Assembly (NCBI GenBank): GCA_009103225.1
Contig: RHPI01003369.1
Coordinates: 565,500 to 629,499 of the forward strand
Direction of reading: 5' to 3'
Source of the DNA: Chlorokybus atmophyticus
Taxonomy: Eukaryota; Plantae; Mesostigma and Chlorokybus algae
Length of the DNA stretch: 64,000 nt
Position 1 is the first letter of the stretch; every line of letters starts with the position of its first letter. The notes beneath the pieces were generated by a model. That model saw only the letters and a program-made list of their open reading frames with translations, was not told where the DNA came from and searched no databases. The position numbers and the translations under genes are program-made. This document shows, in pieces, positions 34,598-47,454 of this stretch.

Positions 34598-35479
34598 TAT
34601 CAATGCAAGGTGGACGGACTTCCAGCTAGGTTGCCACCCTCACGGAGCGTTGATCACCGTGTAGAGTTGATTGAGGGCGTGCACAAGCCATCCTACAGGC
34701 TTGTATACAAGTTGTCACCTTTGGAGTTGGAGGAGGCCAAGAAGCAGATAGCGGATCTTCTTAATTTAAAAGATCCGCTATCTGCTTCTTGGCCTCCCCT
34801 CACTCCAAAATGGATATTTGGCTGGATGTAACCTTTCTCTAAAGAGAGGTTACATCCAGCCAAGTAAGTCACCTTATGGTGCACCAATACTATTCGTGCG
34901 AAAGACATTAGGCGAAATTTCAATGAAAAGGTGCAGTAGACGGCCGGCGATTTTCGCAACGCGCACCGCCGCCTTACTAGGGCTTTTTCGGACATACCGG
35001 TCGCGTTTAGACTCAAGACTGAAGGTCACATTGGGCAAAGTCTACGACTCAGGTAACTTGTGCTGGTCTTAACAACTGTTGGCGCCAAAGTTTAGCCCCA
35101 ACCTATACCATTAGAATGCAGTGTTTACACAGCAAGAATGAGTTTATGTTACTGTTTTGGGCAGATGTTGAGGGGGGTTTTCTGTGTATATTTGCAGCTC
35201 TTAGGCATTAGATTAGATACTCCTGTTACCAAAAGCTGCATTAACTACCACATTAACTCCCGCTAAGCTATCAGGTAGCTGGGGCGGCGGAGGAGGCAGT
35301 GCCAGCAGAGGCGGCAGGGAGGCAGTGGTGTAGGCATGTGGGCGAGGGCATTGGAGTGGCTGGTTGCATAGTAAGGCACATCAGCCGGCTACCTGCCCAG
35401 CTGGAGCTCCTTTGTGCGGCCTGGTGAGGTGAGGTTCGTGCACGACGCTGCCATCGCCGATGCTTATAGGCACGCGTGC

Positions 35480-35815
35480 ATGTGTCTGCACAGGGTGCAC
35501 GCGTGTGTTCATGCGTGTGCGTAAGGTATGATAGGCAGTGAGTGATGTGCGTACTTGTTCTGCAACGCTCTCGCTCTTGCTGGTGTGCATCTGCGCTGTC
35601 ATGTGCATAGCATGTTCAACTACGTACTTGTTGCACCCGTGACAGGTGCATGCCAGGCATGCGTGTATTCATGCTTGTGCGTGAGGTGCGAATGGAAGTG
35701 AGTGCCACAGTGTTGATGTGCGTACTTGTTTTGCAATGCACTCACTGTTGCGATATGGGTGTTTGTGATCACAGGTGCACAGCATGTCCCACTACGTACC
35801 TGTTGCACCCATGGC
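35480..35815. repeat. Imperfect tandem duplication at the transposase 5' end
   Basis: GTGATGTGCGTACTTGTT(C/T)TGCAA and ACTACGTAC(T/C)TGTTGCACCC each occur twice, ~165 bp apart. Confidence 0.6.
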
Positions 35816-38800
35816 TGCTGACGCATCCCTGCGCCTTAGTCCTGTCAAGAAAAAGCGCAAGTTTGACATACATGTGCGTGTTGACCCGGAGCTGCAACAA
35901 GGCTGGTTGCATTGGACAGTTGGCAGCAACTATGCCTGTCCTTTGCCATTCACTAATGCCACTGCACTGATTCGCTGGCTGGCTGGTGGCGGCTTGAATG
36001 CGTTCGTCACCCATCAGATACAAGCCAACAATCACCTCTATGGAGCACTCTCACGCCAGCAGTTTGCGAATGCTCAGCTGCAAACAGATGTTGCATTTAC
36101 CAAACAACAAGTGGAGCATTGGCAGCAGCAGGACGCGCTAGCACGCACTGAGATGGCAGAGGTAGAGAGGAAGTTTACGGCAGCAGCCGAGAAGCTTTCA
36201 ACTCTGCAACAGGAGTTGAAGGAGGCACAAAAGCTCGCAGCTGCTAGGCAATCTCGAAAGGACTTCAGTCAACTGAGCAAGCGAGGGCGAGCATATGCCA
36301 CCGTACATATCAAGTAAGTAATGTCACGCCCTACAACACTAGCTCAGCAACCATTGTAACGCAGCAAGCGGTCATGCATACTTGCAGTCAAGTCCGCACC
36401 GCATTGTGTCCAAGCTTTTACTAAGTTGTTGTGCTGCGCAGGGATACATTAGTCCCCGGCTGGCGCAGTTTAAGCGATGCTGATAGGGCTGAAGCCTTTG
36501 GGATAGCCTTTGCCATGTTGATTAAGACCAAGGAGATGAAGTGGGCGCTTGGCCACAGCAAGTATCTCGAGGTGATTAGGGCGTTGAAGGTATGCAGTCT
36601 TGAATAGCTGACTGTGATAACGATAAGCATGGATGCTGCATACAAGCGTTGGTTACATGTATGTGCGCACACATATGGTGTGTGTGTTTGTGTGTGCGCG
36701 CTTGTGCGTGTGTGCGTGCGCGCGTGCGTGCGTGTAGAGTGACGGACTCAACAGCATGTTTGACCATGTGGACATCAACGATATTTGCATGGTGTTGGAC
36801 ACCACTCGAGGAGAGCAGTCTTATGATGGCTTGTACAAGTTGCTGGCGCAAGCCTCTAGTGTTGCTGGCCTGAACATGCGTTTGCGAAGCAAGGATGACA
36901 AGGTGTCTGTGAACACTTGGCAGCTAGTGCAGGACAGGAGGTGAGATGCTGAGACCTTCAACACGCATGTAAGCACGCGCGTAAGCGCCAGCATGCATGC
37001 TTCCATGGCTCACGCACTGTCAAACACAAGCATGCATTGATGGTGCGTTTGCTTGATGCAGACACACCAACGACCAGACAACGGCAATTCCCATTGTCGA
37101 TACAGCCATTAATAATGGCAAACAGCTGGAGCTGGTGCGGATGTTGGATCTCTCCATTCGATTGCACAATCTACAACCAGGTGCCTTGCCGAAATGCCGA
37201 TAGTAACTTGCATAGTGTTGTTGGGTGGCACTTACTTGTTTGATTTGCAGATGTGCACTCGCCGTTGCAGATCTGCTTCTACTTAGACGAGACAACGGAA
37301 TATAACGACCGCAAGATCCAACGCATCTGTTTTTGAGTCATGAACCATGCCTTGGGGGTTGTCAACGGGACTGAGAGAGGCAAGGCCATGTCTGAGTATG
37401 ACATGCTACCAATCTCTGCGTTTCACGTGAAGAAGGAGAACCAGCAAGACATCATGGCCAATACCGAAGACATTCGATCATTCATACAACAACATGACGT
37501 GAGTGTGGAAGGCAGCACGCCCCTGCAGGTATGCAACATGTGGTGAGCGCTGTGGGTGGCAGCATTGACGATGGCTGATTCTGCTGCTGCTGGCTTGCTG
37601 CAGACATCGATGGGGGATTTTTTGATCGAATGCCATGTAGCTGGTGACTTGAAGACTCTTAAGATATGCGCGGGGTGCAGTTTGGGAGCCATGGCCAAAG
37701 AGCCCTGCTTGTACGGCCATTGCACACGTGACCATCGCGGTTTGCAAGCATGTGGGCTGCGAAGGGACTTTGCTGACACCGTCTTCCCTTTGCCCCCCGA
37801 GCGTATTCACATATGCACCATGCACGCGGACATGCGCATCGTAGAGAAGGTGCGCTTGGCATATGGCATACATCATTGAACATGACCGCACATGACACGC
37901 TGTTGTTTGCAAGGTTCTTTGGTTGCACATCAACTTCGCTTGGACCTTTGAGGGCGGTGACAACGACCAGTCACAAGCTCGCATTGCCAAGATTGAGAAG
38001 TTCCTGAGTTCCCTGTGCATTCAGGGAGGAAACTGCAAAATTGTAGCTGATGGCAAGGCCGGTCGTGAGCACTACCCCGCCAAGATATCCATGAAAGACA
38101 CGACGTGTCGAAAGCTTCTTTCTGGTACACATGGACACACATGAGCTTATACATGCATATTAGCAACCTACTAGGACTGACACTGGTTGTGGTATCAGGC
38201 GTTAATTATAGAAAGCTGCTGGCTGCTGAAGGTGATCCAAATCCCAGCCGACGTGCTGCGAAGCGAGAGGTCTGGGTGGCGCTGATAGCTCTAGCTGCGT
38301 ACTTTACCAATATGTCACTTGATGAGAGTCAGGTGGAGGCCTTCACCACATGCATCACGGATTTCATGGAGAAATTTGTTGCTTGTTGGGGAGAGCACCA
38401 TATCACCCACTACATGCACATTTTGTGGTGTCATGGCCCGGAATATGTGAGCACAGAGTCATCGTTGGCTGTATGGAGCACTCAATCTATGGAGAAGAGC
38501 CATTGGCGTTTCAAGGCAGCTTGGCAAGCTCACACTAACCATGGAGGAGGCACTGCGGAGAACTGTCCAATAGAGCAAGTCCTGCGTATGAGCTGCGATG
38601 TATACACCATAGGTTGCGAGCCAACTACTTGTGCGCATTAAGGCAGAAGTTGATGGAAGGGGACGACAACTTGCAATGGACTGTGCGCGGTTGGCGAACC
38701 GCGTATGGCAATAAAGTGGTGGGAACACAACTTTCGTCATTGCAAACCGCTACAGATTCCCTAGCTGATTTGGAGTTAGAGGTTGATATAGCAATAAAAG

Positions 38801-38844
38801 AACACTGGGACCAAATCGCTGCATTCTACAAGGAGGAAACATAG
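35784..38844 (+). pseudogene. RAG1/Transib-like (CMC-supergroup) DDE transposase, 8 exons, ~790 aa; one in-frame TGA and one frameshift
   Basis: Exons 35784-36313, 36442-36589, 36738-36940, 37062-37180, 37251-37528, 37604-37849, 37914-38124 and 38199-38844, all GT-AG and phase-compatible. Motifs: ICFYLDETT (D1), AGDLKTLKICAGCSLGAMAKEPCLYGHC (D2 + Zn), ICTMHADMRIVEK, ISMKDTTCRKLL, ITHYMHILWCHGPEYVSTESSLAVWSTQSMEKSH (HxxxxH + E). TGA at 37334-37336 (likely CGA>TGA); frameshift near 38590. Confidence 0.78.
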
Positions 38845-38919
38845 TGCAAGAACTGACTAACAATGCCATGATATGCTATACCTCACATATCATTCCAACA
38901 TGGCAGCATAACACTCAAC

Positions 38920-40996
38920 CTACACAGCCACTACCTCAACCACACCAGCCTCCTTCCACCCCCCTGAATGCGGGTGCACCGCACTCACATTGTCCTCGTC
39001 TATCATGTTCACTATCCCATCAGCCGTCTGGAACAGCCAGACTGATGGCATGTGCCACCCTTCATCAACAATTGCTTCGCGCAGCTGACTGAGCGAACAT
39101 GGTGGTGTGATGTCAATGGTGCCTAATGCATTAGCAGCGCACACAATGATGCAAGAGCGCACAGTAACCCCCGCTAGGGTCGAGGAAAATGACCGCCATG
39201 TCATTGTGCTTTGCAGCCCTTCTCCCTCGCGTGTGCCGGTGTGAAAGGGGCATCTGACTGCATGCAAAGTTTATTGAGCACCACTTAGAGGCACTACACG
39301 TTGAAAGCAAGTATGGCTATGAAGCCCAACTTACTTGACAGTAGTTGGCGCATGAGGTAGTAGCGGATGACAACATCAGCGACAACGATGCAAGCTTCAG
39401 TTCCGTTAGCAAAGTGACGGACATCCCAACCAGGGGCGATGGCATCCAATGGAGCTTTAAAACGCTGCACGGCCACCCCGTCCTCGTCGCCCTCTATGTG
39501 CGCCAGGAAAAGCAAAGACTTAGGTGATTGCTTGCAAGGCATACAACGCAGCCTTGCAGCCACCCACTCGTGGGCTGCCAACATTCAACAAGTTAGCTAC
39601 TGCATGCGTGCACGCATGCAAGCTTCCATGCATGCGTGCGCTGCAACTTACGTACGCCATGGAGCCTCACTGTTTTGGCAGTGTGCGTTGTAGCCGCCAA
39701 AGCTCCATGATTGGAGCGCGCCACCAACTGGTCAAATGGGGCGAGAACCACCTCTGGCAATGCCATAAACTGCATCCGCCAGAACTTTACAATGTTGCGT
39801 TTTACCTTGATGCTGCCAAATTCGGAGTCATCTCTGGGCAGCTTGTACCTGTTAATGCATGCGTGCGAATACAAACTAAGCACAATGCAATGCATGGCAT
39901 ATCAACCAACAAGAGCTGTACCTGTATTGATAAAAGTAAACAGGCCTATCAGCTGCCGGTGCTGACTTGCTGAACTTCAAGGCAAACATATGCCAAGGTA
40001 ACACGTCGCACATTCGCACAATCAACCTTGGATCCAAGTCTTCTTTTTCGTCTCCCTCAAACACCTCTGCACAGTTGCGGGATGAGCTAGTTCACGTGCA
40101 TATGCATGCTTTAAAGCATGAGTGTATGCAACACACAATGGGATCGCACATACCATGAGGTCGTGGTTGTAGCGGATGCTGCAACTCCAAGTGATGATGA
40201 TGGACGTAGTGTTGTACGCGCAAGAAGCTCTTGCGTCCTTTACTTGGCTGCAGCGCTAATACCTTGACCACCCAAGGCAGCTGACGAAGCTGCTCTGTGA
40301 GGGCCAACTCAGCCCAATAGCCATGCTGTGGTGGGGTTATCTCATAGCACCCTCCCACTTGCAGGCTCAAGTTGCCGAACTTGTATGCTGCTGGCTTTAA
40401 GCGCGGACGCCGACCTGGGTTGATAAGGAACAATTGTGCACAGCAATTTAGGGACAAGCCAATGCACACAACATGCGCATGACATCACGATAGAGTTGTG
40501 CTTGATGTGTGCCTGCTGCGTGCATATGCTGCATGTGCACATCGCATGCAGCTGCGTATACAAACAAGGGACACGCCAATGCACACAGCTTGCGCATGCT
40601 ATCACAATAGGTTGCAATTGTGCTTGATGTGTGCCTGCTGCGTATGCTGCATGTGCACATCATTTGCAGCTGCGTGCGTATACACGCAATGGACACGCTA
40701 TTGCCCACAGCTTGCGCATGCCATCACAATAGGTCGTGCTTGATGTGCGCCTGATGCGTATGCTGCATGTGCACAGCATCGTATGCACACAAGGGACATG
40801 CCAATGCACACAGCTTGCGCATGCCATCACAATAGGTTATGCTTGATATGTGTCTGCTGCATGTGCACACCGCATGCAGCTGCGTGCGTATACACGCCGC
40901 ACAGCAACGAAAGCAGCATGGCAGATCTAGAGTAAAAACGAGTGTTTACTTACCTCTTCTGGAGCTGACGACCTCAGCCCCCACCTCGCTCTGCAT
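38920..40996 (-). CDS. Transposon-borne BAH-domain protein (BAH + CxxC...CxxH module + small C-terminal domain), 6 exons, 407 aa, intact
   Basis: Exons 40996-40954, 40414-40154, 40066-39922, 39848-39652, 39574-39335 and 39257-38920 total 1224 nt, in frame, all GT-AG. BAH pattern: LQVGGCYEITP...PWVVKVLAL...FLRVQHYVH...EVFEGDEKEDLDPRLIVRMCDVLPW...VYFYQYRY. The ATG exon is the best phase-compatible candidate. Confidence 0.75.
40440..40900. repeat. ~115-125-bp tandem repeat (about 4 copies) in intron 1 of the BAH gene
   Basis: Recurrent GCCAATGCACACAGCTTGCGCATG(C)...ATCACAATAGGT...TGCTTGATGTG(T/C)GCCTG units. Confidence 0.8.
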
Positions 40997-43990
40997 CCCA
41001 TCACCCACGCCCCCGCCCGTTGCCACGCACTGACCCCGTCATACAACAGTGGGTTTCAACTGGCGCCATCTAAACTAAGCGTCCCCGACAATCTGGTGTA
41101 CCCGCTGGCACCAGCGCGGTCGCCGCCGCCGCCGCCGCCGCCGCCACCGCCAACAACCACGCCCACACCGCCGCCACCAGGCCTGCTAACCTAGCCGCCA
41201 GCATCCAAGTAACGGGAGGAGAACAGCAGAGTCAAGACGTGCGGCTTGACTGGACCAGCTCGCTGACTTGGCAGTCGCTTACTACTTGCTGCAACGATGG
41301 ACACTCGAGTCGCACCTCATTGGTCCACAGCTATTATGAATTGATGGCCGTCGAGGGGTCCATTGCACCGGTTTAATTGGAACTTTGCCTAATGAGAACG
41401 GGAGCCTGCGTATGTGCATTGACTACCAAGTGCTCAACACCATTACAAAGAAGCACTGCTTCCACTACCGCGTATTGACGAGTTGCTGGAGCAGCTACAA
41501 AGTGCGCAGTACTTTACCACACTTGATCTTGCTGGAGGTTATCATCAGATCCACATCGCACTTGAGGACGTGGAGAAGACAGCGTTCAACACGCGCTATT
41601 GACGTTATGCATGGTCAGTGGTGTCGTTTGGGCTTACGAACACGCCAGCGACATTTTAGACGTTGATGAACAGCGTTTTTGCTGACTTGCCGGGTAAGGG
41701 AGTCCTCGTGTACCTCGACGACATTTTTGTGTACTCGAAGACGAAGGATGAGCATGTGAGTTTTCTACGGTGCATGTTGCAGCGTTTACGGGAGCACAAG
41801 TCTAACGCTCAGCTACAGAAGTGCAACTTTTTGCTACGCGAGGTGGAGTACCTGAGCCACATTGTGTCACACGAAGGGATCAAGCCGGACCCCAACAAAG
41901 TGCAAGTGGTGCGCGAATGGTTTGCCCCAACCAACGTGAAGGAGGTAATGTCGTTTTGGGGCCTTGCCGGGTATTATCGCAAGCTTATCGTGGGATTTTC
42001 GTGCAATGCGGCCTCTTTAACCACCCTACTCGAGAAAGGGAAGTCTTGGAGCTGGTCTGCAAAGGAAAAGCATGCATTTGCTGCATTGAAGAAGGCGTTG
42101 ATAGAGGCAACCGTCTTGGCTCACCCCGACATGGACAAACCCTTCATTTTGGCTTATGACGCATCCAACACAGCTGTGGGAGCCGTGTTACAGCAAAACC
42201 AATGCATGGGTTTTCAACCTGTAGCGTTCTTTACTAACAAACTGAGTGGAGCAGAGCTGAACTACCCTGTGCGCGAGAAGGAGCTATTGGCGCGAGTGAT
42301 GGCGCTGCGACAATGGCGATGCTTTCTTGAGGTCAAAAGGTTCGTGCTGGAGACTAACCATTCCCCATTGAGGTACTTACAAACACAGCCACATCTGAGC
42401 CGGAGACAAGGGCGGTGGTTGAAGTTCTTGCAACTTTTTCATTTTGAGAGTAAGTACAAGCCCGGTACGTCTTGGGAGTGTGGCCGATGTGCTAAGCCGG
42501 TTGAATGCGATTAAAGAACTCGCTCAAGTGCAACCGGAGTGGGCCGACCAGATCCAACAAGTGCTTTGCGAAGACACAGAAGGTAGGAGAGCCTTGCGGG
42601 ACATGGGGAGTACAGTAATGGACACAAGTGGATATTGGACAAAGCAAGACGGCGTACTCTGGCATCATGGCCGCTTGTACATCCCCAATGTTGCACATAT
42701 ACGCGTTCAACTTTCAAAGGAAGCTCGTGACGTACCCATGGCTGGCCACTAAGGCGTGGAGAGGACGTCACCAAGCTTGAAACAACGCTTTTACTGGCAG
42801 GAGATGCATCGTTATGTACGCGACTATGTGGCATTATGCGGCGCATGTCAAAGGGTGAAAGCAAGCAACCAAAAGCCAGGTGGGTTGCTACAACCTCTTC
42901 CCGTGCCATTGTCCAAGTGGGAGGAAGATACTATGGACTTTGTTACGGGCCTGCCGAAGACAACAGAAGGGTACGACGTAGTACTCGTGTTCATCGGACA
43001 AAACTAGCAAAATGGTACGCTTGGCACCGTGTTGTGAGTCTTGCACAGCACCAGAGACAGCAAGCTTGTTTATGAAGCATGTCTTTCGTTCCCACGGACT
43101 ATCACGAAGCATTGTGAGCGATCGTGATCCCCGCTTCACAAGTAAGTTTTGGGAGGCGCTGCATAGTGCACAGGGTACTACCTTAAAGTTTAGCACAGCT
43201 TTTTACCCGCAAACTGATGGTTACATGGAGCGGGCCAACCGTGTGATTGAAGATATGTTTCGCTGCTACGTGAATGCACGGGAAGACAATTGGGCGGAGT
43301 TGCTGGAAGTGGTGGAAATTGCCATTAACAACCACACGAATGCAAGCACGGGTGTCACCTTTTTGCTCATGAACTACGGCCAACACCCGCTGACACCGCT
43401 GACGGCGTGGACCCCGCGACGAAGTGACGTTGATGTGGAAGCAGTACACGATTTTTACAACGTGTGACATCAACAAGGCACCGAGAGAGGCGCTATTGGT
43501 GGCACAAAATAGGCCAAAACAGTACGCAGACGCGCATTGCCGACGTGTCACATTTCAAGAAGGCGACATGGTATTGCAATCTGCGAGAAACTTACAGGTG
43601 CGTGCTGGAGTTCACAAGTTAAGTGAGCGCTGGCTTGGGCCATTTCGCTTCATCAAAGTGGTTTTGGACGTGGCGTACAAGTTGCAACTGCCCGACTTTA
43701 TGCACATCCACCCTGTCTTTTACATATCCCTGCTGAAATTATATCGAGGAGAGCCACCATTGCGTCCACCGCCTGAGTTGGCTACGGAAGGTCATATGGA
43801 AGTGGAGGACATATATGGTGCGCAACATGCGCAAACATTTGGTGAAGTGGAAAGGCTACCCGATGCATGAAGCCACTTGGGAACCGGAGGAGCACTTGGC
43901 AAATGCACAACATATCGTGCAACAGTATTTGCAACAACGACCAGAGAATCCTGGAGAGCTTCGGACGAAGATCACCTTGGGGGGGAGGAG

Positions 43991-44648: not shown

Positions 44649-47454
44649 GTACAGGTGCTGATGTTAGTGCATGCTTGATCAGGCGCATAGATCCATCAGG
44701 TTTTGCATCCCATGAAAAGCATTGTCTTGTCCGCAACAATGTTGTCAATGGCAAAGTCAATGAATTGTCACCCAGTACAGAACATCGAAAGTAGTTAGCT
44801 AGGCCCAAAAATGACATCAGCTCATGCTGATTGCGAGGGGTAGGCCATTCTTCCACGACCTTCACTTGGTAGGATCGGGCTTGATGCCATCAGCACCAAA
44901 AATGTGCCCTCAATATGGCAACTCCTGCTTGCCAAAGTTGCAGTTGCGGAGGTTGGCAAACAAGTTGTGCTTTTGCAACCGCTCAAGAACAATTGCCACA
45001 TCTAAATTCTTACCATGAATGAAGATGTCATCCAAGTAGACCTTTATAAACTTACTCAGCAAGTCGCCAATCACAGCATTCATCTCGGCTTGAAAGAGCG
45101 TTGGTCAAACCAAAAGGCAACACCTTGTATTCATAATAGCCAATTGGCGTTCTGAAAGCAGTCTCGTGCACATCATTAGGATGCAACCGGATCAGATGAT
45201 AATCATTGATCAAGTAAAGTAATGTAAAGTACTTACTACCCGACAATGAGTCCAGCATGCCATCAATGCGAGGTAAAGGGTACCTATTTTTAACCGTAAT
45301 TTCAGTCAATGCACGATAATCCACACACATGCGCAGCTTCCCGTCCTTTTTTTTTCCACAAAGAGAATGGGAGAGCCGTATGGGGAATTACTCGGCTGAA
45401 TCAGACCTTTGGCCAATAACTCAGTGATCTGCGTTTTCATTTCTTCCCTCTTTATAGGACTCAGCCTGTAGGTAGGTCGTGAAAGAGGGGCAGATCCTGG
45501 TTCAATAGGAATGGCATGACTAATACCTCTATCCGGTGGTAGTTCCGGCAAAACGTCAGCAAACACATCACCGTACGTGTTAACCAGTTGTTGCATTTCC
45601 TGTATGCTATTAATTTGTGCTTGCGATACACACGTTTGGCTTGCAAAGCACTTATAAGCCATGTAGACTCATGCAAAGTTTGTCGCAATTGCGTGGTGAG
45701 CATAATTCTACGCTTACCTTTGCGTACATAACATATTTTCGCATACGTGTCTAGAGTCAGGCGCACAGCTTGCTGCCAAACATGCCCTAGGATGACATCA
45801 ATAATGGCAATCCCAAGATTTGTGATCAATAGCTTAAACACGCCCGGGTATGCACGAATGCGCATGCGTGCATTGACCACGCCATATAGAGGCAAAGTGT
45901 TACGCTCTGCGGCATGCATGTTTGCTGATGATAGCCGAGGATAAGCGCTTCACTGAAGAATAATCAATGAACTATGCATAGCAGCGGTGTCCAACACGAA
46001 TGAAGCATGATAACCCGTTAAAGAACCCTGAAAGGTCCATAGTAAGGGAATGAGATGACCACTAAATGCGGCCACAAGTGCATGGTCACTGTGCGGTGGA
46101 AGCACCACCAACTTCATGGAAGTAGGCATTTCGGTTGTCCGCTTGAACTTAGCCACAAGGTGTACAAGTGATGTCCATCTAGACCATGAGCCATGATAGC
46201 ATGGCATTAAGACATACCCAGTGATAGCAGGATGCTGTATCTAAAACATAGCAAACTCTGCTAAAGTACTACTTCAGCTAGTAGTTGCAATAAATCAGTT
46301 GGTTTGCATGCAAGCTACACACGTGCATCATGCACTGATTCACCACGATGTACAATACAGGCAATGTGTCATGCTTAAACCAAGCATGTGTAACACCATG
46401 TGTACGCAAAACAGATGTCAAAACCAACGTTACTACGCACAGTGGCTACTCCCTACAGCTGCTGCTGAGCCTTGCCCTTTGCCCTTGCCCTTCTTCTAAG
46501 ATGTAGAGGGCTGAGCTCAGGGTGCAGCTGCCAACAACGGTTTGCCGTGTGACCAGGCCTCTTGCAAGAAGCTCAAGTCACCTTTCGCTTGTCGAAGCGG
46601 GGCTTCTTAAGCTGCTGAGGTGCCCCACGTTTACCGTTCGTGTGCGCTCTCTTCTTTTACGCTGACACTGTAGCTGTACCCTCAGTTGAGTTGCCTTGGT
46701 AGATCGCAAAGAGTGGTCGAGACTTATGACAGCCTTGATGTACTCATCCAGATCCCCAGGCCCCCGCACAGTGTTGTCCCCCTTCAGCTGCAAGCTGGTG
46801 ATAAGATCCTTGCATAATCTACTGCGAAAGGAGCGCATCGGTGCAGCCGCATTATATGGAAGTGGTCCTGAATTGACTTCATCAACAAACAGGCGCTACT
46901 CGCGCGCATACACATCAGCCTTCTCGTTGCCCACTCGAAGTTAAGCCAACTTCTCATTTGCTTCCACCCAGGGCGCAACATTTTAGTAGTGGCTGCGCAT
47001 GTAGTCCAACAGTGCTTGCATGATATTTGCAAATGTGCCCTTCTCATGCTGCACCTGCACCTCAGCTGATGCCAAGTCGAGAACAATGTTGAACTTGTCC
47101 TCCTCTCGACATGTTAGGCTAAGGCCAACCAGTTGTTGATGGACATGATCTACTTCTTAATAGTAGTCTTCCTGTCTATGAGATAAAACTTAGATGGCTT
47201 GACCAATGCCATCTTGGCACTAGCAAACATAGTGCTCGTGGCGGGCGCAGAATGCAACGCCGTCACTTACTGAGATGATGTGAGACCAATGACTCTGCAT
47301 TCCCCGGTCTAGAAGTAATGCCTCGCGTCAATGCTTCCTGATGGCAACAATTATGTGCCAAGGATTGGAATGCCATTATGCAATGCGCAAAGCGGGCCAT
47401 TGGAAGCAGCGTCAAGGACACGAAGCAGATTCTGAAATGAATTCATCACTGGGC

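Follow-up and report, generated by a model that had tools for sequence, protein, structure and literature searches.

The 64,000-nucleotide stretch of Chlorokybus atmophyticus DNA studied here (contig RHPI01003369.1, positions 565,500 to 629,499 of the forward strand; hereafter the window) contains a 6489-bp insertion, at positions 34906-41394, that interrupts the reverse transcriptase (RT) of a Gypsy element. The insertion is bounded by imperfect terminal inverted repeats of about 37 nt, and inside these repeats two genes lie tail to tail. One of them encodes a decayed transposase. The other, which is our main subject and is called here the second gene, has a 5' region of its own, which faces the right end of the element; it is real, intact and conserved. 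The coordinates of all features are collected in Table 1.

The six exons of the second gene, all on the minus strand (40996-40954, 40414-40154, 40066-39922, 39848-39652, 39574-39335 and 39257-38920), are flanked by a GT donor and an AG acceptor at every junction, and when joined they give 1224 nt, that is, 407 codons plus a TAG stop. The original prediction for this DNA had proposed six GT-AG exons and an unbroken reading frame of 407 amino acids (aa), and it is borne out by the splice and frame check as well as by the comparison described below. The strings that it had picked out (VGGCYEI, RMCDVL, YFYQYRY, RCMPCK, RCPFH and those of the C-terminus) are all found in the protein, which also has a basic N-terminal stretch, RRGRRPRLKP.

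When exon 2 (86 aa) was searched against 1.84 billion representative proteins, one true relative was found (E 2e-31); the second match was a repetitive junk protein, and there were no further matches. This relative, P0001, comes from Chlorokybus atmophyticus itself, where it is annotated as a gene model of 405 aa (EukProt, jgi Chlat1 Chrsp103S00942). It served as the whole-length proxy in the searches reported here, while the window's own protein was searched as exon pieces; P0001 is known as a gene model alone, and the layout of the element is read from one copy (34906-41394). P0001 and the spliced window protein can be aligned over their whole lengths, with 61% identity and two gaps of one residue each. 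All five exon junctions are gapless in this alignment and all six exons are collinear, and over residues 152-407 the identity is 52-78% per 40-residue block.

Unconstrained substitution of the window copy's coding sequence was simulated to an equal protein divergence (about 0.2 changes per site), and none of the 5000 simulated frames remained free of stops. Because the two natural frames are both open and collinear while no simulated frame stayed open, the protein of the second gene is under purifying selection, which has kept its coding frame. The openness of the window copy taken by itself says less: from two lesions in a transposase of about 2.4 kb, a 1.2-kb frame is estimated to escape lesions by chance about 1 time in 3, so the intactness of this single copy is weak evidence.

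The family is extremely narrow and lineage-restricted. With P0001 as the query, a word-indexed search across 5.8 billion proteins returned P0001 itself only and no homologue in any other organism, and no further copies of the second gene or of the element were found within the 64-kb window. The lack of a homologue outside Chlorokybus argues against a conserved host chromatin gene, and it bears on the reading in which the second gene belongs to the host, captured or domesticated and without a part in transposition: either the element took up a Chlorokybus gene, or P0001 arose from the element and is now a gene of the host. It fits such a history that P0001 is the only annotated member of the family in the Chlorokybus proteome; however, absence from all other organisms among 5.8 billion proteins would be unusual for a host chromatin gene, and a promoter side of its own, six exons and a tail-to-tail place inside the repeats also speak against it. 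We regard capture or domestication as very unlikely.

The N-terminal third of the protein had been predicted to be a BAH domain, and three concordant signals, each weak and not fully independent of the others, point the same way. First, BAH (PF01426) was the sole plausible family when P0001 was compared with Pfam (E 0.032 for the whole protein and E 0.004 for residues 15-175), and the match covers residues 31-150 of P0001 and positions 3-110 of the 121 in the profile. Second, a profile of the region (A2), built from P0001 and the exon 2-4 pieces of the window, gave one match among 177,635 PDB sequences, namely, the BAH domain of BAHCC1 (6VIL, E 0.16), with an alignment that runs through the conserved core. 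Third, in a language-model atlas, 33 of the 40 neighbours of P0001 residues 15-175 are BAH clusters; the top score is 0.95, with 208 of 256 features in common, a score that about 1 in 100 shuffled proteins reach (a rate measured for whole proteins, not for parts). Since BAH is the top or only answer in all three, the N-terminal third is probably BAH-like.

Several results weigh against this assignment. The Pfam score of residues 15-175 of P0001, 17.5 bits, is under the curated gathering cut-off of 30.8. The second-gene exon pieces of the window gave nothing relevant in Pfam and no BAH match, and exon 2 alone matched in the PDB only the His-tags of expression constructs, through a run of four His. 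AlphaFold2, applied to full-length P0001 with the window pieces as a two-sequence alignment only, reached a predicted local distance difference test (pLDDT) of 32. Searches of the PDB with phmmer, using P0001 whole or its residues 15-175, gave no match, nor did profile A2 in the word-indexed protein search at E up to 10. The N-terminal third might thus have some other fold, the BAH signals being a coincidence of a beta-rich pattern: every sequence signal is sub-threshold, shuffled proteins do reach the top atlas score, and the AlphaFold2 models are uninformative. Against this stand the agreement of three methods on BAH and the fact that the Pfam match is in register over almost the whole profile. 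A different fold is unlikely in our judgment, and we hold a BAH-like fold to be the probable one, with fairly good confidence.

What such a domain might bind is suggested by comparison with the BAH proteins that read H3K27me3 (BAHCC1, BAHD1, EBS, SHL and AIPP3). Their BAH domains have a Tyr/Trp/Tyr methyl-lysine cage, and a conserved His and Asp recognise H3P30 (PMC13068663). In the weak alignment with BAHCC1, the only PDB match of the family profile, the cage positions are occupied by W62, H83 and V85 in the window protein and by Trp, Phe and Val in P0001. For this comparison, we take the BAHCC1 cage to consist of the Tyr in 'PYIG' together with the Trp and Tyr in 'WFY'; the His of 'YHPEE', presumably the conserved His that contacts H3P30, corresponds to His in the window protein and to Leu in P0001. 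A canonical methyl-lysine cage thus appears not to be kept, by this one alignment, and the second-gene protein further differs from these readers in having no PHD partner domain. BAH domains without a cage, such as those of Sir3 and yeast Orc1, usually bind nucleosome surfaces or protein partners. The four-His run (residues 86-89, 40191-40202; HHH in P0001) stands where BAH readers have the motif that follows the cage Trp/Tyr, and it is the source of the spurious matches to His-tagged PDB constructs.

These residues bear directly on a bolder part of the original prediction, in which the transposase is brought to heterochromatin by a BAH domain that recognises a repressive methyl mark (H3K27me3, H3K9me or H4K20me2), much as the PHD of RAG2 couples RAG1 to H3K4me3. 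The domain is BAH-like, and its best PDB match is itself an H3K27me3 reader. The present copy does lie in a chromovirus, as had been claimed: the host Gypsy element has an RT, an RNase H and a Chromo domain (E 1e-11), the last of which identifies it as such. But the methyl-reading analogy to the RAG2 PHD finds no sequence support, since the aromatic cage was looked for and W/H/V (W/F/V in P0001) was found in its place, and the presumed H3P30-contacting His aligns to Leu in P0001. The location of the copy in a nest of transposable elements (TEs) is expected from survivorship alone; because insertions in such nests are those that persist, one surviving insertion cannot test steering, and the claim is not supported by it. 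A heterochromatin-steering reader is therefore quite unlikely.

The remainder of the protein is conserved, and residues 176-405 of P0001 have no relatives in Pfam or in the atlas. The zinc module formerly proposed here, a CxxC paired with a CxxH, is not conserved, because P0001 has Gln in place of C226, the Cys nearest the start of 'RCMPCK'; 'PCKQSP' and 'RCPFH' themselves are conserved. An AlphaFold2 model of the C-terminal 110 residues (pLDDT 40) shows, at low confidence, a strand-strand-helix-strand-strand order, which would be compatible with the ubiquitin-like fold suggested for this part but proves nothing.

Table 1. Features of the element and of its second gene (positions in the window).
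Feature	Position	Strand	Details
Second gene of the element	38920..40996	minus	Six exons, 407 aa + TAG; splice and frame check, collinear with P0001 over its full length
BAH-like region (probable), about residues 32-151	39845..40364	minus	Exons 2 and 3 plus the first codon of exon 4; introns 2 and 3 fall within these coordinates
Cage-aligned positions	40191..40274	minus	W62 (40274-40272), H83 (40211-40209), V85 (40205-40203), then H86-H89; from the 6VIL alignment
Residues 152-407 of the second-gene protein	38923..39844	minus	Conserved, without detectable family; includes PCKQSP, RCPFH and a strand/helix-rich C-terminal tail
Intron 1 repeats of the second gene	40450..40920		Four tandem copies of a 103-122-bp unit
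Transposase gene, multi-exon, decayed	~35784..38844	plus	Three-frame reading
Left terminal inverted repeat	34906..34942	plus	Starts CATTAGGC; local alignment of the ends, ~29/37 matches, one gap
Right terminal inverted repeat	41357..41394	minus	Ends GCCTAATG on the plus strand; same end alignment
Putative 3-bp target-site duplication, AGA	34903..34905		Second copy 41395-41397; sole duplication fitting the repeat ends

The gene facing the second gene is judged decayed because it has an in-frame TGA (37334-37336) and, near 38600-38615, a change of frame without an intron. Its C-terminal piece (38201-38638) gave 15 matches in the PDB, 11 of which are RAG1 chains (E 0.3-1.1). These RAG1 matches all fall on the segment of the ZnH2 region with the catalytic Glu (E962), where ITHYMH..HGPE...W......E and ITNYLH..HVPE...W......E are aligned, and a RAG1_ZnH2 cluster is among the atlas neighbours of the transposase piece (score 0.90). 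The five transposase exon pieces, the only form in which it was searched, matched no Pfam family at E up to 10, and the word-indexed protein search with the C-terminal piece gave no relatives. 'RAG1-like' is accordingly used here as a label that is a plausible lead.

Only 75 bp separate the stops of the two convergent genes (38842-38922), so their 3' untranslated regions must overlap, and the transcripts could form antisense RNA pairs. Two copies of a direct repeat of about 171 bp (35470-35820) lie just upstream of the transposase start and extend into it. At the other side, intron 1 of the second gene is 539 nt long, the other four introns being 73-87 nt, and the unit of its tandem repeats is rich in GCATGC and TGTGCA. 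Tandem repeats are thus found about 0.5-0.9 kb from each end of the element; by analogy with CACTA elements, they could be candidate binding sites for an accessory protein. A run of GCC/GCG triplets (41121-41178) is located in the 5' region of the second gene, between its start codon and the right inverted repeat.

The termini of the element read CATTAGG, and the flanks, once the insertion is removed, rejoin the Gypsy RT frame (...ILFVRK / NGSLRMCIDY...). No 5-bp target-site duplication is compatible with the repeat ends; the 3-bp duplication that does fit them is putative, the chance of a 3-bp flank match being 1 in 64. The window contains a single related Gypsy RT (45300-45400), which is frameshifted at the site equivalent to the insertion, where a 3-bp duplication and none are indistinguishable. 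This neighbouring copy is also dead, since an A9 run at 45340-45360 breaks its frame exactly at the FV(E)KK.DG motif. Within the interrupted RT, two palindromes with zero or short spacers (34720-34866; 45-nt arms 89% complementary and 24-nt arms 92%) represent an inverted duplication of coding sequence at most 190 bp to the left of the transposon end.

Two known groups of transposons are worth comparing with this element. ProtoRAG and RAG-like elements resemble it in having two convergent genes within one pair of inverted repeats, in the weak alignment of the transposase C-terminal region to the ZnH2/E962 segment of RAG1, and in a partner gene that may, in the present case, encode a chromatin-binding module. 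Plants, too, have been reported to possess Transib-like proteins (PMC9435367). However, the partner here is BAH-like, with no Kelch or PHD match of P0001 or the exon pieces in Pfam at E up to 10; the putative duplication has 3 bp, and RAG-like elements make duplications of 5 bp, as in AanRAGL (PMC9435367); the termini read CATTAGG rather than a CAC heptamer; both genes have several introns; and the similarity to RAG1 reaches only E 0.3. The analogy with ProtoRAG is therefore a loose one, in which the convergent layout agrees and the duplication, the termini and the strength of the RAG1 similarity do not.

CACTA/En-Spm (CMC) elements, the other group, encode a TnpD transposase and a TnpA accessory protein, generate a 3-bp duplication, have termini that begin with CA and contain internal tandem repeats. 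The present element shares with them the putative AGA duplication (2-3 bp is the size expected of the group), the CA-initial termini, the tandem repeats and a lineage-specific second-gene protein. It differs in that its termini are CATTA instead of CACTA, that the second-gene protein has no similarity to TnpA, and that no CACTA transposase family was found by Pfam in the transposase exon pieces at E up to 10. In its 3-bp duplication and in termini that begin with CA, the element is closer to CACTA/CMC than to Transib or ProtoRAG.

On balance, we lean towards the reading that Chlorokybus has a family of cut-and-paste transposons with two genes each, that the second gene, kept by selection, encodes their accessory factor, and that this product carries a divergent BAH-like domain devoid of the canonical cage. 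The proposal that it is the partner gene of the transposon agrees with an intact and conserved gene that lies inside the repeats beside the transposase; the accessory role itself, and any tethering to chromatin, we infer. The protein, of about 407 aa, would probably be nuclear and consist of the basic N-terminus, the BAH-like domain, the His run and some 250 conserved residues without a detectable family. Its most likely role would be to assist the transposase of the element as an accessory factor. A BAH-like module without a cage would bind the nucleosome surface or a protein partner, not a specific methylated lysine. The long conserved part that follows may be what touches the transposase or the element's DNA.

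The same features could suit an anti-silencing or decoy factor that shields the element from host heterochromatin, like VANC of the Arabidopsis VANDAL elements, perhaps by competing with host BAH silencing proteins. A cage-less BAH-like module in a gene that evolves fast (61% identity between copies) and yet is selected would fit an arms race, and plants offer known examples of accessory proteins with which silencing is evaded (PMC12973397), but there is no similarity of the VANC type (no Pfam match). We consider this role highly improbable and retain the reading of a transposase accessory factor.

Two-gene DNA transposons are already known, and so is the capture of chromatin modules by mobile elements, which has occurred repeatedly across eukaryotes and mostly involves Chromo and PHD domains (10.1101/2021.11.30.470311). 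The present element is like the TEs that have captured chromatin readers (chromovirus chromodomains and PHD/Chromo fusions) in that a mobile element has a chromatin-type module; in most of the described cases, however, the module is fused to the integrase or transposase, whereas the BAH-like module here is in a separate gene. In the papers covered by full-text search, no RAG-like or Transib element is described with a BAH partner gene, and none with a conserved BAH-like partner encoded separately next to a RAG1-like transposase.

If the second-gene protein is an accessory protein, whatever its fold, it belongs to a lineage-restricted orphan family with one relative in 5.8 billion proteins. A further-reaching view, which we hold to be quite doubtful, is that a transposon of the green lineage with a RAG1-like transposase independently acquired an obligate BAH-type partner, in parallel to the RAG1-RAG2 pair, so that cleavage or target choice is coupled to nucleosomes via a different reader fold. 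Should the second-gene protein indeed tether the transposase to chromatin or regulate it there, the element would provide a second, independent instance of a RAG1-type enzyme that works with a chromatin-binding cofactor, and it would offer a tractable system for asking why transposases of this type recruit partners.
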